DNA from: Ramazzottius varieornatus
Lineage: Eukaryota; Animalia; Tardigrada
Assembly: GCA_001949185.1 (NCBI GenBank)
Contig: BDGG01000003.1
Location: 4,833,092 to 4,897,091 of the forward strand
DNA length: 64,000 nucleotides
Reading direction: 5' to 3'
Position 1 is the stretch's first letter; each line of letters opens with the position of its first letter. This document shows positions 1-64,000 of the stretch, piece after piece. The translations under genes were made by a program, and so were the position numbers. The notes below the pieces were generated by a model. The model was not told the DNA's origin. It ran no database searches and saw only the letters and a program-made list of their open reading frames with translations.

Positions 1-3000
1 ACGTGGACGGGGTGGTTAGCTTCCTTTCCTGTGATGACAACGTGTTCAAGGTATGGCCTTGAAGAACTGGGAACTCAGCACCAGATTGTTCTCCGAGAGG
101 CGCACGTTCTCAGTAAAGGTGACCGCGAGGGTGCGCCATTTGAGAAACTGGCGAATGTTCCCCCAGTGGCGCACACTTTCGGTGTTATTGAGTGGAAGTA
201 TGCGCCAGCTGAGAAAGTGATCTGGCCGAGTTTCTTTGCCGTGATCTCAGCTGACCTTGTTTTTGAGATTTATGTCGAACTCATTGTGATTGTTCTGTAG
301 GTTTGGCCGCGGTTTTCCAGCAGCGTCGTCATTGACCAAAGCTCTCCTGACACTACGGTTCCTTCAACGTTCTTTCCTTTCCACACTGTGGCCCACGTTC
401 CTTCCTCGGGCAGCGGTGTCAGTTTCTACGAGTGCGAGCTGCCCAGCTCGGCCTCTCCACACCCTTCTCAAGCTCTTGATCTGTACCAGAATCTTCCATT
501 ATCTTTCCCTGTCCAAGAATCTCATTCGCTAGTCCCGCTCTACGCCTGTTTGTTATGTCCACCCATACATTTCGATAGCGAAACCACCTTCCTCCATCAT
601 ATCTCAACCAAGCACGACCTTCCTTTCGTCCGAAACTTCTCCGATAGTCTCGGCGCCATCGCCCAACGAGACGGGCCAAACGGCGAAGCGGTCTGTTCAT
701 GGCTGAAACCCATATCAATTCACGCAGCCGATCCTACTCCACCATTCAAGAGTTCCACTCAAACAAGCCCATTAACGGACAAAGCACGGCTGACACCCCA
801 ACGGGACACTTCCGGCCCGCCGACCGAACCAAAGGAACAAGAGGCTTTTGGCTCTGTGCCAGAAAATGATCTTCCAGAAAATCTATTTTCCCCTCGTCCT
901 GACATGTTACCTTCGGATCTTCCTCCCAGCTTGTCTGTCCTTCAGTTGGAAGAACCAGAAAGCGTGGGTGTGATACGGAAGACGGAGGAAAGCCTTGTTC
1001 GGCCGACCGCACCACCATTCCAAGGTGTGGATCAGTCGGACGCCGATGATAACAGCCTCGATTCCAACTCTGTTCATTCCTATGATCCCGAAGATCTCTC
1101 CCTTCCTTATCGCTCCGAAGAGCACAACCATGGACACACTCACGAACACGGGAAGAGCAGCAGTGTGGAATGTCCCAAGTGTGATGTCGTATTGGGTAAG
1201 TAAAATTTATTCAATGATAACCTTTTCGAAATTTCTGGAATATTTTCTCCTGGATGAAAGTGCGGCTTTATGGTCTGATTTTGCAGAAGGGTGTCTGAAG
1301 TGGGTGAAAATGTTTTCTTTAAAATTTCTTGCAGGCTCGAGCAAGTCACTGGGCGGCCATATGACGATGGTCCATTCGCGCAACTCCTCCAAGACGCTGA
1401 AATGTCCGAAATGCAACTGGCACTACAAATACCAAGAAACGTTAGAAATACACATGAAAGAGAAGCATCCAGACTCGGAAGAGAGCTGTCCGTACTGTTT
1501 GACCGGGCAAAGTCATCCCCGGCTAGCCCGCGGAGAAGTCTACAGTTGTGGGTACAAGCCTTACCGCTGCGACATCTGCAACTACTCCACCACCTCCAAA
1601 GGCAACCTGACCATTCACATGCAGTCCGACAAGCATGTCAACAACGTCCAGGACCGTCAGAAGACTGGCGGGGAGGTGGCTGCTTCGAGTGCGGAAGGCT
1701 TGAGCCCTGTGGAAGAACTACCGCCGCAACCTATTGCTCGCTCGTCATCCAACAGCTCCAACCGCGGTCCCTTCCGCTGTGACATGTGCAACTACGAAAC
1801 AAACGTCTCGAGAAACCTTCGTATTCATATGACTAGTGACAAGCATCAACAGAATGCTGCCCTGTTGATGGGACACAGCAGAAGGCCGGAGGTCGGCATG
1901 ATGACAGCGCCCAATGGCATGGGAATGTTCGACGCCACCACCATGATGCAGGTTCGTGTCGCCGAATGTCCTGCATTGCCTGGCGCGCGAGTTTGGATGA
2001 AAAATGGGCTGTTAAAGTCCTTTTATCCTTTCCGTCAATTTCCGCCCGGGCTGTGCTGTTAAAAATCCGCACCCACCCGGGAGAAATGTACCGAGTCCAT
2101 AAGACGGCCAGAAAGAGAAGTTTATTGGTTTCATTTGTTTTGTATGACTGTCTTATGGTGATTTGAGTCGACTTTCATTGTTCTTTACAGCTGATGGGAA
2201 TGAATGCGGCGGACATGATGACCATGCAGCAAGCCTACATGACGTCGCTGACCAACGGGTCTTCACCCTCAACCGCACAACCATCAGTTCCAAGCGACCT
2301 AAAGCCCGCACCCCACTCATCTCCCCACATTCCCCGCATTCCCGAGGAAACAAAGGTTGTTCAGTGTCTCATCTGCGTCCATTTCCAGACTGACTCTTTC
2401 GAGGACCTCCACGAGCACGTTACGCGCGACCGCAGTGAGGCCTCGCTGGACAGCAACGAGAGCCTGATCATGAACGGCTCGCAATGTATCTGCAAATACT
2501 GCCAGTATAAAACGAACCTGAAAGCCAATTTCCAGCTGCATTGCAAGACCGACAAGCACCTCCAAAGAATGCAGCTGGTCAATCACGTTGCTGAAGGCGG
2601 CACGGAGAACGAGTGGCGCCTACAGCATCTCAGTACCTCGAACCCCGTTCAGGTGAGTTCGTCTTCTCCTCATCGTTTTCTTCCTGATCTCCTTGTAATC
2701 TATCATCTTCACCTACAAACTTGTTTCTGACCTCTCGTCTATCAAATTTGCCATGAAACTCATTCGGGAATGTTTTCGGCTAGGCAGACAGACTCGACAA
2801 GAGTTCTTCCAACTGGCGCATGCTGCCAGTGTTTTGGCTTGGAGAGGGCGCCACTTGGAAAAAACACTCTTGTCGGGTTGGTAGTTCTTGCCAAGTGGCG
2901 CACTTTCTCATTATGATTGGCCGGAGATGTGCGCCACTCAGGGAAACCACCTCGTGGAGTTTGTTTACCGAGCTTCCAATATTTTTTGAATTTTAATTAA

Positions 3001-6000: not shown

Positions 6001-9000
6001 CGGTGAATAATTCGTAGAAAAATGGCGACAAGGTCGTTTTTCTCAAGTGGCGCACGCTTGCGGCCATTTACGCTAAAACCGTGCGCCGCTGGGGAAGACA
6101 GTCTTGTCGAGCTTCCAATTTGGCAAATGAAATTCATTTGTCGTCCTACAATTGATCCTTCTTTGTTTAGAATGGCCAGAAGCCCTTGAAGAAGTCTAAG
6201 GACACGACCTTAGAGCCCGTCGAAGGTGAAAATTCGATACCTGACAAAGCATCATCAAAGAACGAGTGCCAAGTCTGTCACAAGCAGTTCTCCTCACAAT
6301 GGATCCTCAAAGTCCACAAAGAGTCCTCTCACGGTGACTTTATCCCCAGTAAGATCCTCGAAGCCGTCGCCAGCGAGTACCGCAAGACCATCCGCGCGGA
6401 CAAGTCTAAACAGAAACGTCCGATGGAAGCCGAGCCTTCCTCAAAAACAACCGAGAAAGACTCGCCGAAGAAACTTCGAGAATCCCAACAAGCCAACATT
6501 ACTTCTTCCAGTCCACAACCCTCCACTTCTTCTTCGACCAACGCTGCTAACTCGTATGCAGCTGACTTGATGGCTGCCCAAGCCATGCAGTTACTACCGT
6601 TGCTCTACCCTGGGTTAGGCATGGCCGGAATGAACATGATGGGACTACAAGCCGCCATGATGAACCTCCAGCCTCAGCTGATGGCCAACAACGGGCAGTA
6701 TCTAGAAGCACTCGGCTTACCTGACCTGTCCAAAGGGGGTTCAGGCCAGGCTTCGGCCAAAGGGTACCAGGTTGGGCAGAACGGGGAGAAGAGGAACCGG
6801 ACGAGGATCACTGAAGAGCAGCAGGCGATCCTCCGAGCCAACTTTGACATCAAAAGTTCGCCTTCGGATGAGCTGCTCCAGTGTCTCTGTGAACAGACGG
6901 GGTTAGAACTGAAGGTGGTGAAGCACTGGTACAGGAACACGCTGTTCAAAGAGAGACAGAGGAACAAAGACTCACCGTACAACTTCAACGTCCCGCCGAA
7001 TCCCAACTCGGTTGTGGAAGATGCTTCTTCGTCTGAAAGAGGGGAAGAAAGACCGAGTGTCATTGAATCGGTGGTGAATGCAGAACCGAGAAGGGAGGTG
7101 AAGGAAGAGAAGATCAGGGTACCGGTCATTGTCAAGAGGGAGAAGAGTGTCGATTCGGTGGTGGAGGAAGCGACTAGTCGGTCCATGAGGGATACTTCCG
7201 TCAGTCAGATGACCATGTCGACTCCATCGCCTACTCCGGGATTCAACGGTCCTCTGTCGACAAGCGGATCTATCAGCCAGCAGTTCCAGATGGGTGAGGA
7301 TCGTGGTGGTGGGAAGAGAGCTAATCGGACCAGATTCACCGAACTCCAGGTAAGAAATGAAGAAGTCCAATGTCTAAAATTCCTGGATGCAGAAGTCGAA
7401 AATCTAAACTTGTCTGGTGACGTCACTATTCTTCCATTGTCCCGGAAATGATGCCCTGGTCATGTTGTTAAGTTTTATACAATAACCTAGGTGAAATTTG
7501 ACGCGGTTATGTTGACAAGGGGTTGATTGATTGATTGTTTGTTATGGTAGATCAAAGCCCTGCAAGATTATTTCGATCGGAACGCTTACCCGAAAGACGA
7601 CGATCTGGAGGATCTCAGTCGTGCTTTGGACCTCCAGCCCCGCGTGATCACCGTCTGGTTCCAGAACGCTCGACAGAAAGCGCGCAAGTCGTACGAGAAC
7701 ACCACACCACCGGAAGAAGAAGCTCCGGTGATCCGTACGCCCAGCCTGAACTACCAGTGCAAGAAGTGCCTGCAGGTCTTCCAGAAATACTACGAGTTGA
7801 TTCGTCACCAACGCGTCCAGTGCTCCGGAACATCGGCAGGCCTCAACATGAAGGACATTGACGACGCTTGTAGCGTGGCTTCCGCCAGCTCCGTAACCTC
7901 GTCCAAACTGGGATCGGTGAAGGCGGAACGCGACCTGAGTAACGGCGGTGGTACATACACCAACACCATACCGGTTGCGTCTGTCCTTGCAGCAGCGCCC
8001 TTCATGTTCTCTGGTCTCTACCCAGCCAACAGCCCCTTCGGCATGCTTCAGATGGAGGCGATATCGAATCCTGTGCCTGGGACATCGCAGAGTGCGGGAT
8101 CATCGCCGCTACCGCTGGGTCCGGGGAAGAGAAAGGTGTCATCGGATGACGAGAACGACGGTGGCGAGTCGGGCAGCAAGCGAGTGCGGACGACCATCGC
8201 GCCTGAACAGCTGGATTTCTTGCTTCAACAGTACAAGATCGACCAGAACCCTAGCCGAAAGACGCTGGAACATGTCGCTGCAAGAACAGGTACGACCGCA
8301 ACCCTTTCAAAAGCATGCGCCGGTTCAACCGGCTGCGTTGTCATAAAGGCGCGCTACTTCATATGGATAATGTACCTTGGGGATCGCTTTGATGGCAACT
8401 TTCCTCTCTTGTCTTACTGCGGCTGTTGCTCTGTTTGAAAGACTTGATCCAGTCGCTGAAAATGGCTCGGATTCTGACAGGGTTCTCTTTGTTTGTAGGT
8501 CTGAAGAAGAGAGTGGTACAGGTGTGGTACCAAAACACTCGCGCACGAGACCGCAAAGGCGCGCTGAATGTCAAACAAGTCAACAAGCGCTGTCCGGTGT
8601 GCCGTTTGAAATTCTCCGCTCGCAACACCCTGGAAGCCCACATTTCCACCAAGCACGCGGATATCTACTGTAAAGGAGATGTCAACGTGGACAGCCTTCC
8701 CGACACTGATGGAGGCGACTCAGCCGATGATCATTCCATGGCGCGATCTACACCCAGCCCCGTTCCTCTTCCACCAAAGGTACCATCCCCTCCTTCCGAG
8801 CTGATCTCATATTTGTCACACCGACTGGCTTCAAGTTCTTTACAGTTTTCAAAATCGATCTTTTGTCAAATTATTTATATTTTGATTTTTTAGGTGGCTC
8901 TTCCGTCCTCTTCCGCCTCGACATTGCACATGTCTTACTCGATGCAACGTTCTTACGAAGAAGCCATGAAGAAGTTTCTGACCAACACCGAGATCACACC

Positions 9001-11375
9001 TTCCATCCCGCTGTCCCAGCCAACTTCCGTCATCGTTAAAGCCAACCCGAAGCCGTCTTCCACATCAACCGACGCACCGCTGGACCTATCCGCGCCAGCG
9101 ACCTCCAGTAAGCAATCCACTTCTTCGACAGTCACTGCAGCTTCTCTAGCCATGCTGGGCGCCTTCAATAACCACGACGACAGCTATGGTGGCGACCAAG
9201 AAAGTAGCGATCAGGAGGACGGCTCGAACATGCGTGGCGGCGATGGTTCCGTCAGCCAGAGTGGCCGACAGGGCAAACGGTACAGAACTCAGATGAGCAA
9301 CGCCCAGTTGAAAGTCATGAAGAGGCTTTTCGATGACTATAAGACACCGTCGATGGTCGAATGTGAAACGGTGGGAGAAGCCATCGGTCTGCCCAAAAGA
9401 GTCGTCCAGGTAACTTTCCCATCGAACCGGACAACCATTCTTGGGTCGGCACGGTAGAAAAAAAGCAATATAGACATGTCTGTCAAGGCTGTGCCCAGCA
9501 AGGCTTTGACAGCAGTAAGTACCTAATTCGAAGATGTTTTCAGTTTTCTGTTCTTGGTAGGTATGGTTTCAGAATGCTCGAGCGAAGGACAAGAAGAACC
9601 CGCGGCCCGCCGGTTTCGAGGGGGGTAAACCACCGATCACGGACCACTGCCCCATGTGCAACGTCACCTTCTCGACCAAGCTCACCCTGCAGGACCACCT
9701 CTTCACCAAGGAACACATCGGCCAGCTGAAAAAGAGCGAAGACTGCCACGACGGACCTTCAACCAGCTCCATGATGGCTCGTCTGTCCTCTCCAGCACCG
9801 AAAGCCGATCGTGAACCTGTTCGACAGAGCGTCGTTGTGACCAACCATGCCAAGAAGAGCCCGAGAGAGGGAAGTGGCGACAGGAAGCACGTGAACGAAG
9901 TGTCGCAGTCCGCTTCGAAGAAAGCACAGAGCGCGAAGAACGAAGCGTCGGATCAACTGGCGCGAACACAGCAAAGTATTCAGCAGATGCAACAAGCGGC
10001 GGTGGCTCAAGCCGCCATGAATCCGTACGGAGATTTGAGTGCCATGATGATGAATGGCGCCATGGACCCGATGATGGCCTACATGTGCGCCATGAACCCG
10101 TACTACAATCCAGCCGCCATGCTGAATCCGTATGCCGGTAAGAATAACTATACACACAAAAAAGCTCAGGAACAGGACCTCGAAATTAATGTCTGAAAAG
10201 TAATACGGGGGCTTCAGGCTCGCCAGACAAGCTCGACCAGATTGTCTCACCAAGTGGCGCACTTCTCGAGCCGATGACACTAGAGCCGTGCGCCACGTAC
10301 GGAAACACTCAATCTCAACGAGATAGTTTTTTCCAGGTCGCGCACTCCACCAGCCGAAAATACAGAGACTGCGCGCCACTTTGAAAAAGCATCTGATTCA
10401 GTTTCGTTTGCCAGGCTTCCATGTATAGTCGAAAAGATAACAAAAGATAGCAAAACTACTAACACCTCTGTCAAAAAATCAACTAAATTAAAAGCCGAAC
10501 TTTCGAAAACGATAATACAGAAATTTGTGAACAGGTTTTGACGGTGATGTTTTTGTAGGTCTGATGTACATGGGTGATCCAACCGTTCATGGCACAGCTC
10601 TCCACAATCTTCAGCTCCCGCCCGGTGTAGCTGAGCAGATCTTCTCCAAGCTGAATTCAAACGAAAGGTCGGCGAATCCGTCCGCGGTGGCTTTTGCCCA
10701 AGACGGAAAGCGGTTGAGCGACCTCCGCGAAGTCGTATCCGCTTCGGACTTTGCCTGTGCCACCAGCAGTCAGAGCGACATTGGCAGTGTGTGTCGCAAA
10801 TGTCAAACAGTCTTCCCGACGGAAGCCAACTGTAAAGCCCACCAGAGCAGCCTGTGCTTCCCGGGATCGAAAGACCCAAAGAATATCCTGAAACTCCAAC
10901 AGGTAATGAGAAATTGACCGAATAATCGGAAATTCGAAGCTCCGTAAACACACAGACAGATAAGCTAACAAACTTTTCAAGATTAGTTTAGCAAGCGGCG
11001 CGCGTTTTCGGTGTGACCGGCTGTAAGCGCGCGTCACGCGGGCAAGCAATCTTGCCGAGTTTGACAGTCTTTCCAAGTGACGCACATACCAGTGTCAGAG
11101 GCTGAATGTGTGCGCCACTTAAACAAACGCTGTTGCCGAACTCGCACTCCAACTCAAAATTTGAATTTCAAGTTTTCGAATTTTACTGAGTTCTCCTGCT
11201 GTTTTTCCAGATTCATTTCCATTGTACGGTATGCCAGAAACAGTTGCCGACCATCACGGACTTCAAGCAGCACTGCAGTACACCGTCACACCAAAAGAAT
11301 CGGCACAGTCAAGCAACGCCTTCCCTGAAGAAGACATCTTCCGGTGCACATTTGGAAGAGAAGCGGAACCGATGA
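1..11375 (+). CDS. zfh2: Zinc-finger homeobox protein (zfh2/ZFHX3-4/ATBF1 family), 5'-partial, multi-exon
   Basis: Frame-consistent GT-AG exons: <1-50, 301-1195, 1335-1951, 2191-2652, 3025-3454, 4133-4683, 5109-5960, 6171-7349, 7551-8289, 8499-8779, 8894-9409, 9561-10137, 10559-10902, 11211-11375 (TGA). Family signatures: [32 protein letters not shown] and [27 protein letters not shown]. Four homeodomains ([29 protein letters not shown]), many C2H2 fingers, and a PLDLS motif near 9077. Confidence 0.95.
68..245. repeat. Palindromic N25 element, 2 modules (zfh2 intron)
   Basis: GGCGCAC..GTGCGCCA twice; ends GGGAACTCAGCA / TTTGCCG. Confidence 0.75.
2775..2979. repeat. Palindromic N25 element, 2 modules (zfh2 intron)
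   Basis: CTCGACAAGA..TGGCGCA..GCGCCACTTG twice; right end GTTTACCGAGCTTCC. Confidence 0.85.
4750..4874. repeat. ~46-bp imperfect inverted repeat in a zfh2 intron
   Basis: AATTATTAGCCTGGACAAAATTTTTGACCACCGGCCGAAAGCG versus CGCTTTCGGCCAGTGGGCAAAAAGTTTCTCCGGGCCAGTAATT. Confidence 0.7.
6020..6120. repeat. Palindromic N25 element, 1 module (zfh2 intron)
   Basis: CAAGTGGCGCAC..GTGCGCCGCTG..CTTGTCGAGCTTCC. Confidence 0.8.
10209..10419. repeat. Palindromic N25 element, 2 modules (zfh2 intron)
   Basis: CAAGTGGCGCAC..GTGCGCCAC plus a second degenerate module. Confidence 0.8.
10945..11143. repeat. Palindromic N25 element, 2 modules (zfh2 last intron)
   Basis: CAAGCGGCGCGC.. and CAAGTGACGCAC..GTGCGCCACTT. 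Confidence 0.75.
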
Positions 11376-14296: not shown

Positions 14297-15763
14297 ATGA
14301 CTTCCCTCTCTGCCAAACTACAGAACGCGGCAGCTTCCCTCAACCATTCGTCCGGCGGGACAATGGAAATCTCCAAGAACCGCAAGTCCTACACGTTGGA
14401 GTTCAAGCGTCAAGTCATCAACTTTTACCACGCGCACGCTGGCAACATCTCCCTGGCGGCCAAGATGTTTGGTGTGGATCGCAAGATGGTGCGTAACTGG
14501 GTGGAGAACGAGGACTTCTTCCGTCGACAAACCGAAGACGGAATGCAAGAGCCCATGCCTCTCGTTGCAGCGGCTCCTTCTCAACCCACCAAAGCTCCTC
14601 CACCACAGCGCAAACGTCTCGAGCGCAACTTTGCGTCGGGAAGTGCAGCGCGGTATCCAGAGCTGGAGCGCTCGCTGGCTGAATGGTGGACTGTCCAGCT
14701 GTCTCACGGTCAGAATATCAAAGCCAAGGCCTTGAAGACTCACGCGCTTCTACTTTTCCATCAGTTGTACCCCAACTCCAGCGACCAAGACTTCAAAGCT
14801 TCCACCGGATGGCTTCAACGTTTTGTCGCTCGTATGGAAGCTGGAGGAACCAGCCCGATGGGAGACAACCAAAGTGAAACTAATGCTCAGCAACTTTTTT
14901 CAGGTAACGAATGGTCCGAAACAAAAGCGAACTCGGCAAACATACTGTACAAGATTGTTTCCCCACAGTTGCGCGCGTTCGTAGTGTAATTGACTAAAAA
15001 CGTGCGCCACTCCAAACGATCTTGTCGAGCTTCACGAGGTTGCGCACTGTTGCGGTGTTTAAGACTGGGAGTGTGCGCTGCTTAGAAAAACGATCTGACC
15101 GAATTCGGTTGTTTTCACAAGTGGCGCACATCAGGAGTGATATTGGTTGGAAAAAGTGCGGCACTTTGAACAGCGATGCTGTCGAGTTTGCTTGCCTGCG
15201 TTCCGGTTCGGGTTTCTGAAGAAGTTCAGGTTGGCATGTGTTTGTTTCCTACTGTAGGTCGAAGTAATGCCTTCAACGGTGGTAACGTCAACATTCCGAG
15301 CTCACTAGACCAAGGAGATAATAACGCGGCAGCTATGAACCCGTTGATGTACTGGGCAGCTCAACAACAAGGAAACCTCGGCATGCTGTTCAGCCAGAAC
15401 CAGATGCAGCAGAACGCAATCAAAGAACCGCTGAAAGCAGCACCCGGAAGTAAGAAGCGAACTGCGGCGGATCTCGTGCCAATTTATCCCAAGACTTCTT
15501 CTCAACCAAGCTCCAGTAATCTCTTTCAACCCAGCCCATCGCACCAGTCTCAGTCGTCCTTCGATGGTCCTGCAAGTTCGAAGAGGAACAGAACCTATTT
15601 CGAGACTCCACAGACGTCGGAGGAGAATGAAGAACCACCGGCTGTGAAATACGTCGCAATGTCTCAACAAGATCGCGCTGTTATCGAACAGCAAAAGCAG
15701 GAAGTTGAGAGATTCTTCCAAGACTGCCGAGACTTTCTAATTTATTTAGACAAAATTCAGTAA
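14297..15763 (+). CDS. pogo/Tigger-derived DNA-binding protein (Brinker/psq-like HTH plus CENP-B HTH), no DDE domain
   Basis: Exons 14297-14903 and 15258-15763 (phase 1 intron). N-terminal HTH RKSYTLEFKRQVINFY...AAKMFGVDRKMVRNWV; CENP-B/Tc5 HTH ARYPELERSLAEW...FKASTGWLQRFVAR. The C-terminus is Q/S-rich low complexity with a short terminal helix. Confidence 0.85.
14930..15200. repeat. Palindromic N25 element, 3 modules (intron of the CENP-B-like gene)
   Basis: Left end AACTCGGCAAAC; three GCGCAC..GTGCG modules. Confidence 0.8.
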
Positions 15764-16070: not shown

Positions 16071-17907
16071 CTAGGCCGAAATGGCTTCTTGTACTCCATT
16101 AGTCGACGCTCCGTTCTGGACTACGTTGCTAGAATAGTCGTACTTGCCCACCTGACTGTGGTCTCCCGTACGTTCAACTTTATACTTGCCTTCATACCAT
16201 GTGACGTACTCGAGAACCTTGTCGATGCCCAAGAGGGTCGGGTTCGTTAGGAGGTGCTTGTACAGGACGCCACGAAGGACGTGGAGCGCTTGGGCGTCGC
16301 TGTAGTAATGCAGGGTGACTGGATCACGATACTTGGCTGGCCTGCCTGTGATTATACAGTAGTGTGGTTCGGGAAGTTTGGGCTTGGGTGTTTCGGGAAA
16401 GTACTGACGGAAGAGTTCTTCGTCAGAGAAAGCCATGAGGTTGCGCGAATATTTGTCGCCAGGCTGGTGAATGAAGCTTTCGAGGTCTTCCTCCAACAGA
16501 CTAAAAACGGAACAACAGTTCATCACTTGGAACTTGGACAAAAAACCCGGCAAGATCTGTTTTGCGTAGTGGTGCACACTTTCAGCTTACACCACCCGAA
16601 AAACGCGCCACTTGGGGAAATAATCTGACTCGGCAAGATCGGCTTTCCAAGTGGCGCATACTTCTTGTCTATATTAGTCATAGCGTGCGCCACTTGTGGA
16701 AACGATCTGGTCGAGTTTATTTGCCGAGTTCTCACTGGGTTAATTTTAGGTATAGGATTACTCGTCTTACCTATCATCGTGCGATCTCGGGTAAGGCATG
16801 GACTGTGTTGTGGAGATGAAGCATGAGACGAACGGGCCTTTCGTGACCTTGATCTTCCTGGATTTCTTTTTCTCGTTTTCCTCTTCGTCGCGTGCATGCC
16901 TTTCTGCGAACCAACGCATACACTGATTCACGGCGATCGATCAACAATAGGGATTCATTTATTCAAAATCGCACAAAGAACCGTACCCAGATCAGCCTTA
17001 TTTTTCTTTTCTGTCTGGATACTCTTCTGGACCCTTTCAGCTTGGGACGGTATTCGGTGCTTGATCTTCTTCCGAGGTCCGATTTCTTGCCTCCTCTGCT
17101 CCCGAAGCGACTCCATTTCTTCCGTTTCGAAACGCTTGGCTGCGGTACTGTCCCGAATGCTTCGACCTGTTGGAAGAACAGCAAGAGCGAAGTTGACTGT
17201 CGTAAGCGCAACACCCAACAAGAGCTGCGCACGACGTCATATGCTAAAGCACGAGCAACGCGCGCAGCCAACAGTATCATGCGCAAGCTCACGTGAAAAT
17301 AATACAATATTGTTATGGTCATCTCAGCAACTTACTTGATGGCGTTACAGACGCTTTCTTTTTCTTCTGAGACCCAAACTCCGTAACGGAGAACCCATCT
17401 CTACTATCTTCGCCGTTCCCGGAGCTCGTAGACGGAGTAGGGGGCTCGCCGTCCAGATCGTCCTCCTCATTGTATTCATCCTCTGAAGCAGGCAGACTTG
17501 GCTCTTCAGTAGTTTTCTGCTTCTTTGCCCTGCTACCTTTCTGTCGAGTGGTCGAAGATTTTTGCTTGAATGCGGCGAATGGACCTTTTGTGGGTCTTTT
17601 GCGCTTGCGTCGTCCTTCCTCATCATCACCTTGCCCTTCTTGGATGTCGTCTTCCAAATGTTCCTCCTCTTCGCTGAAGTCAATGTCTGATCCGCTGTCG
17701 GATGCTTGGTCCTCTCCAAAGTCATCATCGTTAGCTTCCTATAAACCAGCACATACGTCACTCTCGGGATATCATAAACAGGTGAACGGATATTACCTCG
17801 GTAAAGCCACCATAAAGTGTACTGTAGGCTTCTTCTTCGTGGAAATCTTTGATGAGGCCAGGCATCAGCGCACCTGCATTGGCTCTGCGAGAACGTGAAG
17901 CGGCCAT
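16071..17907 (-). CDS. VPS72: VPS72/YL1, H2A.Z chaperone subunit of SWR1/SRCAP-p400, multi-exon
   Basis: N-terminus MAASRSRRANAGALM...YSTLYGGFTE, an acidic DSDIDFSEEEE region, and C-terminal YL1_C motif CIITGRPAKYRDPVTLHYYS. Confidence 0.9.
16540..16732. repeat. Palindromic N25 element, 2 modules (VPS72 intron)
   Basis: CAAGTGGCGCAT-N25-GTGCGCCACTTG; right end TTTGCCGAGTTC. Confidence 0.85.
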
Positions 17908-21589: not shown

Positions 21590-21765
21590 CACTGACTCTA
21601 CAAATACGCCACTTTCAAAACTACTAATCGACATGGTGAACAAATTCTACGTTCGACAAATAAATTCGCCCAGATTTCTAACTCAAGTAGCGCATGTTTT
21701 CATTGTTGTTAGCTGGAAGAGTGCGCTACTTGGGGGAACGAACTGCGTGGGTTCAGTTGTCGACG
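21590..21765. repeat. Palindromic N25 element, degenerate (downstream of the pseudogene)
   Basis: CAAGTAGCGCAT..GTGCGCTACTTG. Confidence 0.7.
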
Positions 21766-29199: not shown

Positions 29200-29300
29200 A
29201 AGGAGAGTTGGCTTTCTCAAATGGCGCATGTTTCCACTGTTACTGGCTGGAAGTGTGCGCCACTTAGGAAACGAATCTGGCCTAGTTCGTTCGCCGAATT
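29200..29300. repeat. Palindromic N25 element, 1 module (intergenic)
   Basis: CAAATGGCGCAT-N25-GTGCGCCACTT. Confidence 0.8.
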
Positions 29301-38624: not shown

Positions 38625-40614
38625 TTAAATTTTCTTCTTGTCTTCCGCAGTGGAATCACCAGCAGCTACTTTTCTTCTATTCAGATTCACTTCTTGTGCT
38701 GCTTGACTTTTCGGGGTTGCAGACAGCTTACTCCTAACAGATGCGATGTCAGTAACGGTCAGTAGCATCATGATGTTGACCGCCATGAACAGCAGGCTAG
38801 CCACCCAAACCAGGAACAGCACTTCCTGCTGCTGAAACTCAAACAGGTAAGCTGTGCCCAACCAAAACGCCATGGACCCGAACCAGGAATACCCAAGGCT
38901 CTTTAGTCGCGGTGAAAGTGGGTAGCCAAACTTCGGAATGACCAGAGGTAAGAACGTCAGGTACCACATGAAGTACTGCAAGCAGAAAAACGGTTAAAAA
39001 AGTCATCATGTTAGCCCTACTGTTAAACTCGCGCACTATGCCCAAGAGAATAATGGAAAAGTGCGCCGTTCGGTCAGGAAACAGGAGCATTTTCTCGCCC
39101 CGACCTGCTGGCGCAATTTACCGTTAACATGAACCATAAAGTGCACAACCTGATCAAGGAACAAAACGATTTCCCGCCCGGGACAGTGGCGCATCTCCCC
39201 ATGAGCAAAAGCGACAAAGCGCGCGAACCGAAATTCGGAAAAAAACGCAGGTGGAGAGTTGTTACCTGAACCGTGCAGACTTTGTTGAAGATGACAAAGA
39301 CGAAGGTGTTTAGAAAGCACACGAAGGGTAGATCGCGGAAGTACTTGAAGGAGTACCAAATCCAAAATGCGACTTGTGGAACGAAAGGCGCTAAGTTCAG
39401 GGCTTGTTCGTACGGAGATCCGACTGTCTTTCTCAGAATGTAGAACCACGGTGAGAAGTTATGCTGGATATCCCGACGCGTCAAATGGTACAGATACGTC
39501 TCTTTGATGAACTCCTGCCCATATATCGCGTAGAAAAGTCCTGTGAGAATGCAAAAGGACAAAGCGGAACTCAGCACGAAGGCAATCTTATTTTTATTTG
39601 GAGTCAGCAACCGAATGATTCGCTTCATTCCAATCGACGAGCCTTCTTCACGCTCGGAAGTACAGTAAAAGTACAACGGCACGGCGTAACATATCGGGTA
39701 GATTTTGAAATGCACGGAAAGGCCGAAGACGAGGCCGGAAAGGAGGCACTTCCGGTCCATGTGAAGGACGAGGTTGAGAAGACACAAGACGCTCATGATG
39801 GACTCGGCGTTGCCTCGTGTCGAGACGTTGATGGCCACAGGGTTGTACAAAGCCACCATCATGCAGTTCTTCATGGTGTCTTTATTGACTTTCATTCGTT
39901 GGAGAATAATGAAAGTCAGGTACGCAGCGACAACGTCCAGGAAGGCGAAGAGAGCTTTACCGAAGGCGGGGTGAATGAAATTGTTAGGAAGGAGCATATA
40001 GGCGAGAAGTGGAGTGTAGCGGTATGTGTCTCGATTGTACGGAGACTTTTCCTGCAACAACGAAATGACGTTAGGTTTTTTTGGTGCCACTTTGATGGGG
40101 CAGAGAACAGCTTTCCGGTCGTTGCTTTTCCAACCCGCGCACTTTATCGCTTAACGTAATGGTACGGTGCGCCACTTTGCCACGGCAAAGAACTGCTTCT
40201 CTTCTCTGGTCAATCTGCGCACTTTTCCATTACAACTGGCGGCGTAGTGCGCGAGGATTGCAGTGTATTTTAGATGATGACTTCCTCTTCTTTTTGCTTG
40301 CAGTACTATATACTGTACTAAAGCCCCTCTTTGTAGTCATATAAAAGTTCGGCTGGCCACTTTCGCCAGTCATGTGAGGAAGAATTACTTACTTGGCTAA
40401 CCCATGTGGCTGCATCGGAGAAGACTCGGTAATCAATGTCGGTGTAGTTAAGGTGCAGGGCTTGGTCGTGGAATTCTCCGTAGATGATCATGAAGAGTCG
40501 GAACAGAAAGGCGATGCCGAAGTGGTCGTAGAGGAAGCTGTACGGCGTGTTGAACTTCGAGAAGTCGATGATGTTCTCCGCTGTGCTGGGCTCGATCTCC
40601 GTCATAGGATCCAT
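38625..40614 (-). CDS. PIGM: GPI mannosyltransferase 1 (PIG-M)
   Basis: Exons 40614-40393, 40051-39266, 38975-38625. Motifs YTDIDYRVFSDAA (DXD), SPYNRDTYRYTPLLA, STRGNAES, YLYHLTRRDIQHNFSPWFY, FNKVCTVQYFMWYL. Confidence 0.95.
39030..39240. repeat. Degenerate palindromic N25 element (PIGM intron)
   Basis: GCGCAC..GTGCGCCG; TGGCGCAA..GTGCAC; AGTGGCGCAT. Confidence 0.55.
40075..40255. repeat. Degenerate palindromic N25 element (PIGM intron)
   Basis: CCAACCCGCGCAC..GTGCGCCACTT; CAATCTGCGCAC..GTGCGCG. Confidence 0.6.
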
Positions 40615-45007: not shown

Positions 45008-46804
45008 TCAGGCCGTTACTTCCGGTGCGTATTGTTTGCTCACTCTATCGAACTCTCTTTCCTACGACGAAAAAGGTTTTTCGATATTCTAACACGTCAA
45101 CGAATAAAAAGTTGGAATTACAAGCCCAATGATCTTACTTTGTTCGCCCATAACTGACTGACGGGATGGTTCGGATGCGAGTCTCGAAGTTGGTTGACGT
45201 AACGGTTTATCACGTCTTCGGACTTGTCAGTGTGCCGACTACAGATCACCAGGTTGATGAGAATGTTGGGGTTATTGGAATCCTATCCAACAACAGACAG
45301 ACGCTCGTAAAAGGGGAACGATAAAAGAGAAGCCAAGACGAGGGTAATTGAACCTTCTGAAGGGCTTCCTGCAAGAAGCTTTCCGCTTCCTCGTATCTGC
45401 CCATGTTAACCAGCGCAGTGACCATGCCGTTAAGCGCGATCGTCGAGTGGGCGTACTTGTCAAACAGATCGTGGAAAATGTGGTACGCTTCCTGAACGTG
45501 CTTTCCGTTCTACAAAGCGAACATATGCGAAACTCAAGGTCGGTACTCCGCAAGACCTTGAAACACAGGTGACAGGTGATGGAACTCAGGGAAAACTCAC
45601 CAGCTGCATATTGAGGGTTGCTTCGGCCAACTGCGTCAGCGTGGCGTCCTCATCGGTCTCTTGCATTCGTTTGACTACTTTCCTGGAAGGAAAGAAGAAG
45701 CATAGCTGAAAGGAAAGACTACAGCACGATTGTATGAGTGGCTCCTGCAGATTTCGTTGTCCACTTACCCGGCTTGATCCGGTCGTTCCATCTTGCAGTA
45801 AGCGAAGACCGAATACGCCAAGCTGGAACACAATTCAAAATGAAGGTTTTTCAAGTGATGGGGCCGGAAGATTGAACCCAGAAGCGGTTCACGGAGAAAC
45901 AGAAATAACACAGTACGGACCATTCGAGATGGTCGGATTGGTGCAGGACGCGTAAAGCCGCCTCATAATTCTATAAAGAGATACGCAGAATCAAGATGAG
46001 TGGGTCGTCCGTCCAGAAAGCATTGCGGCTGCCGAGTTTACGGTTTACCTCTTCGTAACAGTAAATGGTAGCTGCGGTGACGAAGAAAACGTAGTTGGAA
46101 CTGGCGACTTCGCCGGAATTCAGCTTGTCATCAACCTTCTTCACCACAGTCGCCCTACAAACAGCTCAAATTAGTCAGTCTGAACTACGACCTAAGCAGA
46201 ACCCACAAGACAGATTCGTTTTCTCAAGTGGCGTACGCTTCCAGCCAATAACACCATACACATGCGCCACTTGGGAAAACAGTCAATCTTGATAAGATCC
46301 TTTTCTCCAGGTGGCGCAAGCTTCCAGCAAATAACAGTATAATTGTGCGCCACTTGGAAAACCATCTTGTCGGTTTGTCTGGCAAGCTTCCACTTAGCTA
46401 ACGGCCTCGTTGCAGCCAAACAATGGGCTTCTCACGTCGCGTACTTTTTATTCTCGTCTACGTTCGATCCTTGACTGATTTGTAAGTATTCGACCAGCAG
46501 ACTCAACGATTTAAGCTCTTGGGAGGCCGTGCTGCGTAGTTCGTCGAGGACAAGCTTGTATTTCTCCAGTCCAATATACGCTCGGTACATGTAGACGTCC
46601 CGTTCTAGCTGCAGGTCGGGTGTTGTCACCTTAAAGACCAGCTTGATTACCAAAAACCGAGGTCCGAAAGATGTCGATTGTCGAGTGGTATGACTGGCCT
46701 ACCTTGGCTTTCTGAGCGTCGTTTACACAGCGTTGAAATTCGCCGAGATAGTACATGTTCTTGATCTCGAACAACGGATCCGTTCCAGATTCCCGCTGAG
46801 CCAT
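45008..46804 (-). CDS. COPE: Coatomer subunit epsilon, multi-exon
   Basis: DPLFEIKNMYYLGEFQRCVNDAQ; LERDVYMYRAYI; KRMQETDEDATLTQLA; DSNNPNILINL...RYVNQLRDSHPNHP; last exon EREFDRVSKQYAPEVTA*. Confidence 0.92.
46200..46392. repeat. Palindromic N25 element, 2 modules (COPE intron)
   Basis: Two modules with 25-nt spacers GCTTCCAGCCAATAACACCATACAC and GCTTCCAGCAAATAACAGTATAATT. Confidence 0.9.
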
Positions 46805-49478: not shown

Positions 49479-50081
49479 TTAGCTTGGCTTTCCTTGAAAA
49501 GCTTGAGGGGCTTTGAAGGCATGCGAGTTCTCTTTGGGAGAATGATGATTTGAGCCTCCAGATGCTGCTGCAGAGTTTGTAGACATCTTGGAGAAGTTGA
49601 GAAGAGCTTCCGAGAAGTTTGGTGGTGTTGCTGGAGTGTTAGCTGGCGCACACATCTACGGGGGAAAAACATGATGAACGTTTGGGACGGGAGCAAATGA
49701 ACTGGACCAGAGTGGCGCACATATTCAGTACTATTTGCCGAAACTGTGCGCCACATCGAAAAACGGTCTGGATCCATCCATTGTTCTACGTTATTGTTGA
49801 TTGATTGGAAAAAAAGTTCTTCATTGCAGATGGATGAACTTACAGGGTTCTGTTGCTGCCGTATGGATGCCGGGGGTGTCGCTCCTTGGAAGAACTTGCT
49901 CAGAGCAATCTTAGGAGGAAGATTGGAAGCAGGTAAGGTTGAGTTGCAAGATGGAATAATAGAGACTACGAACCTCCAGCTGCCAGTTTGTGTTCTTCAG
50001 AGCGGTTTGCGCATCATCAGACGAACATCCGGTTACCATTGCGAACTGGTTCACCATGACGCTTTGCTTCAGGCCGTCCAT
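49479..50081 (-). CDS. UBALD1: UBA-like domain-containing protein (UBALD/FAM100)
   Basis: Exons 50081-49974, 49909-49844, 49655-49479: MDGLKQSVMVNQFAMVTGC...NWQLEIALSKFFQ...MCAPANTPATPPNFSEAL. Confidence 0.88.
49700..49775. repeat. Palindromic N25 element, 1 module (UBALD intron)
   Basis: GAGTGGCGCAC..GTGCGCCAC. Confidence 0.78.
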
Positions 50082-53020: not shown

Positions 53021-54889
53021 ATGGCACCGCATCGATATCATCAGAAACCCAAGCGCCGCAGCAACACCAAAACTGTAAGCGAGCATCGTCTTCATCACAA
53101 TGGGCAACTCGGCAAACGGAATCGACGAGATGGTTTTTCCCCAAGGGCGCACTCCTCCAGCCAACAACACCGGTGAAGTGCGCCACTTGGGGAAACATCC
53201 TTCTCGGAACTCTTTTCCCGAGCTGCCGACTCATCAGTTGGCTCTTTTGCATTGTTTGCTGTTTTATTTAGATGAATGAAATGATAGAGGATATCATGGA
53301 GCTAGAGAACCAGTCACACAGTGGGAAACCTCGCGGTCAAAAGAGCGCTGCCAAGCCGTCGCCTATGGTACGCGCCACCCGGCATTCAGCGTTTCCCGCT
53401 GACAGAAGGCTGCACTCCTTTGACGCTTTACGTCCGATACTATATTTTGATATCTTTCCTTCTGTCAGGGTGACAGTAATAACTACCGAATACTCGACGC
53501 GTCTACTGGTCAGCTGCTCTCACCGAAGAAGTCTTCCTCGTACCGCTTGCCCCGATCAAGAGGCGGATCGGATAATCGGAAGAAGAAGGACGACCATAAC
53601 GTCAGTAAGTACATGATTACATCTTAAACAAACATTGGTGTGAAATAGTCCCCTTGCAGAACGCTTTCTTCAAAGCGACACGTCCGTTTGATGAATGTTT
53701 TGTATCGAAATTTTGTGCCCAGAAACCAAATATGAGCGTTGGCAAACGATTTCACCCAGATCATTACATCAAGTGGCGCACATGCGAATTGTTATTAGCG
53801 ATAAGCGTGCGCCACCCAGGATCATCGATCTCGAAACCCGACAGATTGCTCTCTCAAGTGGCGCATGCTTGTAGTGTTGTTAGCTGAGAAGCGTGAGCTA
53901 CCTGGGAAAACGATCTAGGTGTTTTCATTTGCTTACGTCCCTAACAGAATTTAATCCCGCAGATTTTTTCTGGCGTATCAATTTGGTGAAAATTGTCTGT
54001 GAGAACTGGTTCGATGGAAAATTGGATCTACGTGGAATTTGCGTTTCTTGTTTCAGTTGAGAGGAAGCGGCGGAACAACATCAATAACTTGATTAAAGAA
54101 CTGCGATCATTAGTTCCACCGGCGATCAACGAAACGTAAGAGTAATCAATTTCTGAAATGATTGAAATTCGAGACCGGCACATCGTAACCGGTTTGACAT
54201 CAAAAAGATTCGCCAGTCTTCAGCTCAGAATTGTTTTGTCTTTTGCAGAAGCAAAGGTGGTACGCTGAAGGCCACTGTCGATTATCTTCGAGGACTAAAG
54301 TCGGACGCCGAAAGTTTACGCGTCTATGCCAATTCTCACAAACAATGCGACCAAAATAATCGCAAGCTCCAAGAACGAATTAAGGTAAGTCGTTTAAGTT
54401 GGGTAAAGTGGTCGTCGAGAGTTTGATGGAATGTTACGGAATGTCTCTTTGCGCTTTTTACTATCTGACCAAAACATTTTATTGTCTTTCAAACAGGAAC
54501 TTGAGCAGGCACTCAACCAGAAACAAGCCAATGTTCGCCATCCGGTCGAACACGACCAGGCTTTGCCGGGTTCGCCACCGACCATACCGCACAAGCGAGA
54601 CTCGATGGAGCTGACCTTTCGGCCTCCAATCAATGCCTTTACCAACGCTTTCAAGATGGAACTGGAACAGCAGTATGAAAGCCAAGTCTTCCCGGCGTAC
54701 GAGTACCTCGAAGCGCCAAGCATACCGCAAGATCTTCAGCCGGTGGAGTTTAGCGACGAAGACTTTGCAGAAATACTCAAGGGCGTGGCACCTTCGGAAA
54801 TGGCGCATCCGGTCATGCATGATCCACTCGTTTCTTACTTTGATATGGATGGCTTGGAGGCTCAAAATGGCCTTGTCCATTTCATGTAA
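53021..54889 (+). CDS. Divergent, short MiT/TFE-family bHLH-Zip transcription factor
   Basis: Exons 53021-53074 (inferred), 53272-53367, 53469-53604, 54057-54135, 54249-54384, 54497-54889. MIEDIMELE activation-type motif; RKKKDDHNVIERKRRNNINNLIKEL..SKGGTLKATVDYLR..NRKLQERIKELE. Confidence 0.82.
53101..53225. repeat. Palindromic N25 element, 1 module (MiT/TFE intron)
   Basis: TGGGCAACTCGGCAAAC..GGCGCAC..GTGCGCCACTTG..CCGAGCT. Confidence 0.82.
53738..53935. repeat. Palindromic N25 element, 2 modules (MiT/TFE intron)
   Basis: CAAGTGGCGCAC-N25-GTGCGCCAC; CAAGTGGCGCAT.. Confidence 0.82.
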
Positions 54890-55124: not shown

Positions 55125-55210
55125 GCAGAGCAAGATCGGTTTTCCGACTGGCGTGCGGTTGCAGCTAATTGCACTGAACATGTGCGTCACTGGCTGAAGG
55201 TTTTCCGTGG
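55125..55210. repeat. Degenerate palindromic N25 element (intergenic)
   Basis: CAAGATCGGTTTTCCGACTGGCG..GTGCGTCACT. Confidence 0.55.
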
Positions 55211-57933: not shown

Positions 57934-59779
57934 ATGTATCTTTTTCCTGCCCTCCTCATCCTGACATTTCACCCTGCACTCTCTGCTGAAGATGAGTTTG
58001 TGGGGACAGAAGAGTCGACGGTTTCTGGTGTAACAGTCCATTACGTCCATGCTTTCCTGAACAACTCCGTTACCCTGCTTTGCGATGGATCTGACGGCAC
58101 CCCGACGTGGACCGATCCCCTGGGACGCCAGCTGCCATTCTTCTCGAACGTATCGAAGAATGCAGACCTACCAAAGTATTATATCGAAGCGTCAGGAACG
58201 CTGGTTGTTCTAGATATTACAAGATATAATGGAGGTGAGTTGGAACTGGGAATATGGAGTTACTGTAAAGTCATTGTGATTGGTCAATGACGTCAGGTCT
58301 GACAGGCGGTTTACGCATGGTGATTCATGACGTAGTGCGCGACTTGATCGGGGCATTTATTCATGCTGGTTTCGAAGCTGCTGTCAAGACGTTTACGGAG
58401 ACTTGTTGACTTGCTTCTTATCTTTCCAGGTTATTACTGGTGTACAAGGAATGGACTTCCCGGAAACGCCACTATATGGCACGTGATGATCAATTCATGG
58501 TTCCGTTATCATCTGGAGATAGAAAGCGTCATGTAAGTCAGAGTTGCTCTCACTTCCGGTAACAAAATTGCATTTGTACTGAGGTTCTTCATTCAGAAAA
58601 AGATTCTTCATTTTGTTCATGTTCCCAGGTATGGATGGTATGCGGGTCTGGGTACGCTTATCCTGGGCATCACAATCGGTCTAATGAAATTGATTGTCCG
58701 AATCTGCTGCCCACAATGCCATGCAAGAGCCAGCGCTGCAGCTCGTGTCCAGCAGATGCGACTCCTCATCGTCGCACTCGAAACCTACCGTCATGATCAG
58801 TCTACTCGCCTGCGAGAAAACTACACTGCACAAGTGAGAGGCAAAGATCTTCCGGTTAAACTTCGAACATTGTAAATTTTGAGAGACCTGCAATCGAAAC
58901 CTGGAAAATCAGAACCTCCAGTGGCGCACATTTCCGGTTGTTGCAATGAAAACGTGCACCACTTGGACGAACTCGACAAGACCGTTTTGCCAAGTGACGC
59001 ACTATTCGGCCAGTAGCAATAAGGAGCTGCGGCACTTGAGACAACGATCTTGTGCATTTCGTTTGCCGTTGACCCCGATTCTTTAACGTGTAATCTTTTA
59101 GGTGGAGAAACTGAAGGAGAACTGCGCAGCTCAGATGGAAGGTCTTCGTGACCATTACGGCACGAAGATCAACCGTTTTCGCAACTACCGTCTACCTTTC
59201 GGTAATACGCGTGACCAATATTGGCAGCAAGTAACCAAAGTCCGCGACTACGGCTCCAGCCAGATGGAGCGTCTTCAAGACAACTACGCCAAGAATCTCG
59301 GCAAGCTGCGGACCTACAGCGTGGCCCAGCTTGAACGTTTCCGGCAGCAGTACCAGCTACAGCACAAACACATGGCTAAGATATTGGAGGCCATGAATTT
59401 TACCCTAGATTGTCGTGCAGGCGGGGCCGGTGAAATGACACCTAGTCCTTCGATATTGCTCAATATGGATCTTAGTTTAGCCCAGCTAAGGTTGGAAGCT
59501 TCAGATCTGCATAGTGGCGGTAACTCTTCGGATAGTATTACTTGTGGTGGACCACAGGTCTCAAACTGTGTGGTCCAGATGGAACGCACGCGGGGTGATG
59601 TTCCCGTCTTGGATTTCAACTCTGACAGTATGGACTTTGAGACTAGTCTGGAGAATGAACCGCTACGAGATGGGTCGAGTACTGAGGAGAGCCTCAAAAG
59701 GAAACTGGAAGAAGTGGTGGAAGATATCGTCCGTTCGGAGAATGGCGAATCCGAACCGGAAGCTGAAAGTGTTGTTTGA
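57934..59779 (+). CDS. Single-pass Ig-domain membrane protein with IGLR-2-like cytoplasmic helical repeats
   Basis: Exons 57934-58234, 58430-58532, 58629-58833, 59102-59779. Signal peptide MYLFPALLILTFHPALSA; Ig domain (VTLLC..W..GTLVV..GYYWC); one TM segment; tail LRENYTAQVEKLKENC...RDQY.QQV.KVRDYGS...KILE. Confidence 0.78.
58890..59070. repeat. Palindromic N25 element, 2 modules (Ig-protein intron)
   Basis: CAGTGGCGCAC..GTGCACCACTTG..CTCGACAAGA..CAAGTGACGCAC. Confidence 0.82.
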
Positions 59780-60181: not shown

Positions 60182-61621
60182 TTATCGGCCACAGTCGCCT
60201 TTACGTTTTGTCAAGTGAAACTTGAAGTCATTAGGGAACGGAAATGGGGGCGGCTGGAAATCGGCACTGGGTTTCACATTATTCAGACTAACCAGAAGTC
60301 TTCCAAAGAACGCTAAATCGAGGGAGGTGAGCTTCCGCTTCTCATGCGTTGCCCAGGTCGTTAAGTCCTGCTCATTCAGACACTGTCTGAAAGTCAGATC
60401 GCGGTAGGATTAAACGGCAGCTCGGCAGAAAAGCTCAACTAGATCGCTATTCCAAGTGGCGCACGCTTTCAGCCAATAATAGTGTAAATGTGCGCCACTT
60501 GGGAACAAGATTTTGGAACAAGACGACACCGATGCTTCGAGGCAGCGTACCTGTATTTCCGCCACAGCGCATCGGCGTCCCTCACAGCTTCCTGTGTCTC
60601 TTGGTCCAAATTAGCCAAAGATATCATGAGCCACTCCAGCTGTTCTTCAGGAAAGGGCCAAAACAGCTTCTGCTTATCCCGCTCCTTGTGCACGTAAGCT
60701 CGACTTTCTTCTTCGGAAGCGATTCTAGGAATCACCACAGACTTGACACGAATCTTGATATGCCATACGATGTCCGCCAGTGCATACCAACCATCTTCCG
60801 CGGTAACTCGCGACGACCTTCTCAACGTACTCCAGTAACTTTTCCAGAAGTGGAGTTCTGGGTTGCACGGCATCAAGTACGGACCGAATTTGATGGTAGA
60901 GTCGACAACGTCAACAGACGACACCGATGCTTCGAGGAAAGTCCGCCAGTCTTCGCTCGCCTCGAAGCTGTTCCTAGCGTACGTTATCTTTCTCGGCCAA
61001 CAGGCTGACTGTGTTGTGGAAGGATCGATAAAGTAGTAATGATGATATCTGGACGTCTTCCCAACCACCACCAAATGCAAGATGCTTTCTTGAGGTATCG
61101 GATAGGCTTTTGACCATTCGACACTGTCGAATCTAACCCAGCGGTGTTCAGCGAAGGTAGGGTTATCCAGAAACGCGATACCTTTGTTGCGTGCTGGAGT
61201 GCGGATCAGCATCGACTTCCAGCGATTAAATGCCCTAAACAGAGACGATTATTGTGCATATGGTCGCTCCGGCGAATGCATTCGACCACACCGTTGTCTC
61301 AAGTGGCGCACACTACTGGGTAATATCACCGAGAACGTGCGCCACTTGGAAAACGATCTGGCCGAGTCTGTTTGTTGAACAAATGATCTATTTTACTTAC
61401 TTCGCCAGGTTCGAAAGTTCTGGGATGTCCAAGTAGCTGAAGATCTCCTTCAAGATGAGCGCTGGAACCAGCCGAAAGACGTCTTGCACGGTGAATGGGC
61501 TCTGTCCAACGTCCACTTCCGGTGCATCCTTGTGGTTTCCGTCTCCACGCTTGGACTGCGTCTTTGGTCTTTTGGCTGGCGTGTTGCGCTTGGAACTTGG
61601 AGGCTTCCTCTTCTTCGGCAT
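60182..61621 (-). CDS. F-box-like protein with an unrecognised C-terminal domain (intact paralog)
   Basis: Exons 61621-61401, 61234-60551, 60386-60182. Basic NLS-like N-terminus, then an F-box-like segment VFRLVPALILKEIFSYLDIPELSNLAKAFNRWKSML. Confidence 0.75.
60419..60530. repeat. Palindromic N25 element, 1 module (F-box gene intron 2)
   Basis: GCTCGGCAG..CAAGTGGCGCAC-N25-GTGCGCCACTTG. Confidence 0.88.
61265..61378. repeat. Palindromic N25 element, 1 module (F-box gene intron 1)
   Basis: CAAGTGGCGCAC-N25-GTGCGCCACTTGGAAAACGATCTGGCCGAG. Confidence 0.9.
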
Positions 61622-63038: not shown

Positions 63039-64000
63039 TCAGGTGTCCTCCATAGGCATCAGCGCATGCCTAAAATTTATCAGAAATTTTGTTAGGAATT
63101 TCACGGTTATCTTACCAAAATTTCATGTACACTATCTTCAAAATGTTCGATTTCTCAAGTTTGCTGCAAATGTATTTTACAGTAATCTTCCAACTAGACG
63201 AATGGCGAGAGTTCGGCAAACCATCTAGACAAGACCGACCTTTGAGTGGCGCACTTTGCCAGCCAATTGCACTGTAAATGTGCACCGCCGAGAAAATAGC
63301 CAAACTCGACCAAATTGTTCTTCCAATTGGCGCGCGTTGTCAGCCGGTAGCATCGAGAAAGTGCGCCACTTGAGGAAAACATTCTTGTCTAACTGTGAGC
63401 CGAGTTCGTAGGCAGTCTTGAGATTTTTGAATTTCAGGGTGACGTGATTCTAGTTTTAGTGGAGGTTGATAATGATAGGAAATAGACTGACTTGGGTGAT
63501 TAAAATGTGCACTTACCATTTGGTGAACTCACGACCATATTCCCTCATGGTCAGGGACCAATGGCGCACTTCCGACTCTTCCGTGCTGCCATATCCCAGA
63601 AGGACTTGTCCCAAGGCCGTCGAACCAAAGAGATTTAATTTCGCATAAACGGTCACTTCCACGGTGGTGTGTTTGATGTCCTCCAGAGAGACTCCCAGCG
63701 TGAAGGAAAAGGCTTCCCGGTACAAAGGGTCCTTGGTTCGCTTCACAACCTTGGTCGTCTTTTTGCCAATGTGTTTGTCGTTCTGTATGACCTCCACCCG
63801 CACGAAGGTATCTGAAAGGTAGTTCTAAGTTCAAAGAAACCTTTAGCACGTTCAGGGAATAGAAATAGGCTGTTGAAATTTATCTACGAAATGTTAAAGA
63901 CTAAGGTTGGGAGCGGCCACAATTATGTGTATGGTATAATGAGTGTCTGATGCCTCACCTTTTTCATTTTTTGCGCTACTGGTATTTTTGGAATTTTGCT
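63039..64000 (-). CDS. Synaptotagmin-like protein, C-terminal C2 domain (5'-partial)
   Basis: Exons >64000-~63959, 63811-63517, 63069-63039: DTFVRV...KKTTKVVKRTKDPLYREAFSF...LGQVLLG...HW......TKWHAL. Confidence 0.85.
63205..63408. repeat. Palindromic N25 element, 2 modules (synaptotagmin-like last intron)
   Basis: GAGTTCGGCAAAC..GAGTGGCGCAC..; TGGCGCGC-N25-GTGCGCCACTTG; right end CCGAGTTC. Confidence 0.85.

Follow-up and report, generated by a model that had tools for sequence, protein, structure and literature searches.

Modular palindromic elements in introns of the tardigrade Ramazzottius varieornatus are probably an old, lineage-specific family of non-autonomous DNA transposons

The window analysed here is a 64-kb stretch of the Ramazzottius varieornatus genome (contig BDGG01000003.1, 64,000 nt), in which genes including those of a ZFHX-like protein, YL1, TRAPPC3, TOP1 and PIG-M are interspersed with copies of a short palindromic element. 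The element consists of one to three modules enclosed by terminal inverted repeats. Each module (~83 nt) is a long imperfect hairpin, the best-kept part of which is a pair of 11-nt palindrome arms, AAGTGGCGCAC and GTGCGCCACTT, separated by 25 nt (hereafter the core). The module loop is asymmetric and contains CAGCCAAT, so the module has a direction. Within an element this direction is shared by all modules in 24 of 28 doubles and in both triples; they are thus tandem copies in direct orientation, and the element itself has polarity. A loose core pattern (9-nt arms with at most 2 mismatches each, spacer of 22–32 nt) picked out 47 modules, grouped in 31 clusters, from the window, compared to ~1 in shuffled sequence. 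With an iterated nhmmer profile, 53 modules were found in 31 elements, of which 10 hold one module, 20 hold two and one holds three. This profile count bears out a sequence-only reading of the same stretch, which had reported about 32 copies with 1–3 modules, usually 2.

All element positions given below are those of profile matches, with the strand taken from the loop orientation, and the elements hold two modules unless stated otherwise. In the left part of the window lie 80..225 (−; these coordinates are the module span, with the terminal repeats ~25–30 nt further on each side) and 2773..2979 (−; with termini, also found by terminal match), the latter between the open reading frames (ORFs) of a zinc-finger and a homeobox gene. 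A single module at 6038..6107 (+) is located between two Pfam-supported exons (5178–5990 and 6186–7451), and 10212..10422 (+; also found by core pattern) in an intron of the ZFHX-like gene, followed by 10980..11135 (−). The lone three-module element of the window, ~285 nt in length, occupies 14926..15210 (−; also found by core pattern) in an intron of an HTH_Tnp_Tc5/BrkDBD gene, and 16526..16735 (+) lies in a YL1 intron between conserved blocks. The single module at 21670..21743 (−) is probably intergenic, between TRAPPC3 and TOP1. TOP1 itself carries 22455..22650 (+; also terminal match) in its 3′ part, 23649..23859 (−; also terminal match) and 24337..24543 (−; both terminal 10-mers exact) in introns, and 24898..25048 (+) probably in an intron. 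Further to the right are found 29209..29280 (−; one module), 29995..30142 (+), 31579..31651 (−; one module with a variant outer stem), 33406..33580 (also terminal match; loops opposed, no strand assigned) and 34533..34719 (−). Beyond the intron cluster described in the next paragraph follow a weak and doubtful single module at 40123..40177 (18 bits, no strand assigned), 46213..46370 (+), 49711..49771 (−; one module), 53101..53229 (+; one module with both termini, 129 nt, also terminal match), 53756..53916 (−), a single module of moderate score at 55131..55193 (+; 37 bits), 58917..59053 (+), the one-module elements 60416..60520 (+) and 61263..61375 (+), and 63205..63411 (+).

Intron boundaries were obtained from contigs of four public runs aligned to the + strand of the window; these contigs skip GT..AG intervals and therefore represent spliced RNA. 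On the + strand, the introns 36548–36607 (60 nt) and 36715–36785 (71 nt) hold no element, whereas 35322–35950 (629 nt), 36922–37194 (273 nt), 37496–37772 (277 nt) and 37906–38194 (289 nt) hold the elements 35453..35652 (no strand assigned), 36955..37158 (−), 37540..37745 (−) and 37949..38092 (+), respectively. The splice sites of these introns lie 20–50 nt outside the element ends, and the intron length that remains after subtraction of the element equals that of the neighbouring element-free introns. An element lengthens a short intron from ~65 nt to ~275 nt, about 3–4-fold. The sequence-only reading had placed about 28 copies in introns of 11 different genes and none across a coding exon. 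The second statement agrees with our data, in which no element falls in an RNA-supported exon; the first is borne out for the four elements in RNA-defined introns and for about seven more between conserved or Pfam-supported exon blocks, but not for at least one (21670–21743), which looks intergenic. Orientation of the elements relative to the strand of the host gene was mixed, with no bias. A six-frame stop-free mask, applied to class the sites as intron-like or intergenic, gave no separation, as it covers nearly everything at 47% G+C. Contigs that retain an element-bearing intron were also found in the RNA runs. The contigs of run X13 differ by ~1% from the assembly, in exons as well as in the retained intron (window 33000–38900); the public data therefore include another strain or a close relative.

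The termini of the element are inverted repeats near GGGAGCTCGGCAAAC, present at both ends, with a conservation per position of 62–92% (52 ends) and a sharp outer boundary. Outward of these, enrichment is seen for T and next for A-A (71%, 58% and 71%), beyond which the composition is that of the background, and conservation is at background 2 nt outside T-GGGAGC. The consensus strings of the sequence-only reading are correct as consensus, but single copies are far more decayed than its wording implied: the terminal 17-mer at ≤2 mismatches was found at only 8 ends in the window, the 31-nt module arm at ≤3 mismatches in only 2 arms, and of the 66 elements examined only 20 had both termini recognisable (≥10 of 15 positions). 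Where both ends were recognisable, element length was 121–129 nt with one module and 196–213 nt with two. The core-to-core distance was exactly 45 nt in 40 of the 47 window modules detected by the loose pattern. Whole elements fold far better than shuffled ones (z = −7.7 as DNA, z = −3.7 as RNA), and they are short, below the limit of ~800 bp for miniature inverted-repeat transposable elements, or MITEs, and without coding capacity.

Abundance was estimated on the assembly of 55,842,812 bases in 200 contigs. Exact paired cores occurred 740 times genome-wide (reversed control: 0) and the terminal 17-mer at ≤1 mismatch 366 times (control: 0), with matches on many contigs. Twenty random 10-kb pieces (200 kb) contained 33 elements with 47 modules, which extrapolates to ~9,200 elements (95% interval 5,600–13,400) and ~13,100 modules, amounting to ~1.4 Mb or 2.5% of the genome; element density in the window is about three times that of this random sample. 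Searches of the literature turned up nothing of relevance, either on the core motif or on a palindromic repeat of tardigrade introns. In a comparative tardigrade genome paper all 65,730 interspersed repeats of R. varieornatus are given as 'Unclassified' (PMC5531438, S3 Table); exons, introns and intergenic DNA of this genome amount to 19.56, 12.38 and 23.89 Mb (PMC5531438), and the total share of transposable elements in this genome has been put at 4.3% (PMC7943196). The paired core had no match in JGI metagenome contigs, a null result of low weight, given how little tardigrade DNA those collections contain. Judged by the literature search and the published repeat tables, the family is undescribed, and as a kind of transposon it is fairly ordinary.

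Loci of relatives were found by searches with single exons, and three of them could be compared with the window: L027, an ENA metagenome scaffold of 5.3 kb (amino-acid identity 76%), collinear with window 34192–40616; L028, a 10.4-kb ENA contig (ERZ25067493) collinear with window 14375–24825; and L029, 20.7 kb of Paramacrobiotus metropolitanus, syntenic with the window. No significant module match was obtained in L027, L028 and L029 (36 kb), and none of the 11 window elements in syntenic stretches has a counterpart in any of them (0/11); the element at 34533..34719, for instance, is missing from L027. The L027 orthologues of the 273–289 nt introns are the same three introns, ~60–90 nt long and element-free. 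Because the same introns are short and empty in L027, they predate the elements, which were thus inserted into pre-existing introns in the Ramazzottius lineage. The short contigs L025 and L026 of relatives, in total only 3.7 kb, held no module, and the window itself offered no paralogous filled and empty sites, having no paralogous segments at the DNA level. In L028, the syntenic genes have introns and spacers filled with (GATT)n-type simple repeats in place of the palindromic element (for example at 1230–1370, 1650–1740, 3160–3440 and 7260–7470), a different route to inflating the same introns.

All copies are old. The best identity between copies was 70–82%, and none of them is young. Conservation was ascertained with a single-sequence query that weights every position equally. 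Identity to the consensus was 0.875 and 0.89 for the core arms, 0.73 and 0.68 for the outer stems, 0.69 for the loop and 0.72 for the terminus, the last rising to ~0.77 without its first two positions (an estimate from per-position digits); the resulting gradient, core > inner terminus > stems and loop, fits selection for transposability. Stem changes are overwhelmingly one-sided, so pairing has not been maintained since insertion, and the compensated pairs cluster at three polymorphic positions, which look like old variants of source copies. Divergence of the core plotted against that of the remaining positions gave a negative slope, which is produced by truncation at the detection threshold. 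The Jukes–Cantor distance of non-core positions from the consensus is ~0.37 (converted from 0.29); for comparison, four-fold sites of TRAPPC3 between R. varieornatus and L028 gave 1.16, half of which is ~0.58. A distance of this size fits insertion after the split from L028.

Taken together, we consider it probable that the elements form an old, now inactive MITE-like family of non-autonomous DNA transposons specific to the R. varieornatus lineage, because they have discrete short lengths, sharply bounded inverted termini, thousands of dispersed copies and empty orthologous sites. The sequence-only reading had offered an old, very successful MITE or foldback family as one of its two options, and this one is upheld by short, non-coding copies with inverted termini, numbering ~9,000, old and absent from orthologous introns of relatives. 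Copies entered existing introns after the split from the sampled relatives and rose in number to ~9,000; today they are old and decayed and persist where they are harmless, mostly in short introns. Movement was presumably by cut and paste, with a DDE transposase supplied in trans; the cores and inner termini may have been its binding sites, kept intact along the lineages of copies that were still moving, and copies in exons may be missing since selection removed such insertions.

As for candidate transposases, the genome holds at least 129 matches to Harbinger-type DDE_Tnp_4 (for example C3:355948-356421, C14:1034282-1034755 and C1:6413181-6413654) and 57 to piggyBac. Several Harbinger matches share an identical 427-residue open frame with equal scores, which suggests recent activity of this family. 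A piggyBac-like family is represented by three copies, L033–L035 (C17:89475-93344, C4:360844-364710 and C13:1299205-1303068), which are 96–97% alike and hence young. One of its ends is flanked by TTAA, and its termini are unlike those of the element; inside the TTAA end, however, lies a diverged module-like stretch (44–108 nt; score 33 versus 16.9 ± 2.7 for shuffled sequence), which either is a nested copy of some age or points to the source.

Several results weigh against the transposon interpretation. The termini of the element were absent from the three Harbinger and three piggyBac loci that were read. The signal for a target-site duplication is weak, the best candidate being a 4-nt direct repeat beside GGG, with 42 of 80 matches compared to 35.0 ± 2.9 after permutation (p = 0.016, uncorrected for ~60 tests); no other register beats the 4-nt one, the flank consensus is A-A-N-T beside GGG, and the papers on Sola and Zator offered no flanking-repeat consensus for comparison. 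Furthermore, the spacer length is unchanged in 85% of modules, and decay is uneven, with core sites off the consensus at 12% and other sites at 29%. The same unevenness is seen independently of any consensus, with a pairwise identity of 0.79 in the core versus 0.565 elsewhere, and non-core variation is only mildly structured into subfamilies (standard deviation 0.082 versus 0.066 with permuted columns). Uneven decay also fits selection after insertion. The sequence-only reading had named uniform neutral decay among the marks of an ordinary MITE; decay is not uniform here, the core being ~2.4 times better conserved than the rest.

The conserved core is thus the one feature that stands out, and it could reflect selection for mobility or a binding site of the host. 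Its rate of decay is less than half that seen elsewhere in the element, and its spacer length is kept; two readings fit: selection on copies for mobility, or binding by a host protein. In the latter, transposon copies would have been exapted, and the ~13,000 paired 11-nt cores with their fixed 25-nt spacer would be bound by a predicted tardigrade DNA-binding protein, maybe a domesticated transposase-derived factor, and held by purifying selection. If true, thousands of introns would have been connected by a lineage-specific transposon into a single network, regulatory or of chromatin architecture. We regard this as unlikely. It would account for the superior conservation of the core over stems, loop and outer termini with all positions scored equally, for the exact spacing, and for non-core variation that is near star-like, but selection for movement would leave the same pattern, with only those copies still moving whose transposase-binding sites were intact. 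Copies sampled sparsely from ~9,000 would carry long histories of such selection. The inner terminal repeat is also well kept, as a mobility signal would be, and for this reason we favour selection for mobility over host binding; in addition, the elements follow no rule of orientation or position relative to genes. The sequence-only reading had named a functionally maintained element as its second option. Because decay is not uniform, that option retains some small probability; the old MITE is the better supported of the two.

One locus bears on maintenance by the host. The PIG-M-encoding exon of the window is 97% identical to RvY_08183 of R. varieornatus, and an intron of this gene contains a module-like palindrome (window 39027–39070, L027 4081–4124), a core variant with two changes per arm. 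Both R. varieornatus and L027 retain the palindrome in an intron that is otherwise unalignable, as exaptation would predict, but this is a single locus with a non-significant profile match (E = 0.92). Either a constrained copy of great age or an intronic hairpin with no relation to the family could explain it.

Function as RNA was weighed as well. The 83-nt module, transcribed as part of the intron, might fold in the manner of a microRNA precursor, or as long double-stranded RNA, and enter a small-RNA or RNA-editing pathway. In accordance with this, folding exceeds that of shuffled sequence both as DNA and as RNA, the elements are transcribed within introns and intron-retaining contigs exist, and the module is similar in size to a microRNA precursor. 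On the other hand, stem mutations are mostly uncompensated and the elements show no bias to the host strand, and we consider such a role very improbable. Membership in a known structured RNA family was rejected, with no Rfam match at gathering score in the window and stem changes that are one-sided.

Still less probable is a system like the bacterial repetitive extragenic palindromic (REP) sequences and bacterial interspersed mosaic elements (BIMEs), with which the sequence-only reading had drawn an analogy; in such a system an HUH transposase (Y1, RAYT-type) recognising hairpins would move the element. The likeness holds only in appearance, namely palindromic units in variable number between conserved ends. 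The modules are, however, mostly same-facing instead of alternating, and the host is an animal with the elements in introns. Y1_Tnp (PF01797) has 0 matches in the genome, whereas 6 of 14 control genomes match, and mobilisation by a RAYT or HUH enzyme was rejected on this ground. Helitron Rep matches in the genome are mostly broken, and the elements do not have Helitron-type ends. The least probable reading of all, that each insertion was an introner that created its own intron, draws on the element making up most of the length of the carrying introns and is refuted for the three introns tested, where the splice sites lie outside the element, the residual length is that of element-free neighbours and the orthologous introns pre-exist, short and empty, in L027.

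Some further features of the window were recorded alongside the family. Adjoining the module at 29209 is a 58-nt inverted repeat (28553–28610 / 29134–29191; 97% complementary, arms 523 nt apart), which has the appearance of a young element bounded by terminal inverted repeats and unrelated to the family. Two TOP1 introns contain a ~30-nt motif with a small internal hairpin (24290–24332 and 25511–25553; L028 318–349), which is nearly invariant in the related species, with the surrounding intron unconserved and no Rfam match. The exon 14291–14986 (+) encodes HTH_28/BrkDBD and HTH_Tnp_Tc5 DNA-binding domains and is conserved in L028 and L029; the next ORF is without a DDE domain, and the gene's intron carries the only three-module element of the window. 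This gene is probably a domesticated pogo/CENP-B-like gene.

For tardigrade genomics, these results give an anatomy and a name to a family that has hitherto been masked among 'Unclassified' repeats, and that explains a noticeable share of intron length in this very compact animal genome. The family provides thousands of dated insertion markers for Ramazzottius, and it makes a clean test case for the question whether the host or the demands of transposition preserve a transposon motif. The system is not new in kind: had they held, the REP/BIME and introner readings would have been striking in an animal, but both fail.

Among known systems, introners are likewise high-copy MITE-like families in the introns of many unrelated genes, but they give rise to the intron themselves, bringing or co-opting its splice sites, whereas the elements described here sit in older introns. 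Bacterial REP and BIME sequences share palindromic units in variable number and a high density in non-coding DNA; they are bacterial, have alternating units and are mobilised by RAYT, none of which applies to the element. As in Foldback (FB) elements, a single long hairpin can form over the full length of the element, but FB elements have long terminal inverted repeats made up of subrepeats, while the termini here are ~17–20 nt and the modules are direct tandem copies. DINE-1 of Drosophila and the Pearl-type elements of bivalves are MITE-like, with variable internal repeat units between conserved ends. By description only, the element resembles them in its conserved ends around a variable number of units, and it differs in that its unit is a long palindrome with a fixed 25-nt spacer and its arrays are very short (1–3). 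From MITEs in general it differs in a body of one to three tandem palindromic modules and in a core kept much better than the termini; in being short and non-coding with terminal inverted repeats, in thousands of dispersed copies of discrete length with strong hairpin potential, in its apparent enrichment in and near genes and in its absence from orthologous sites of relatives, it is like them.

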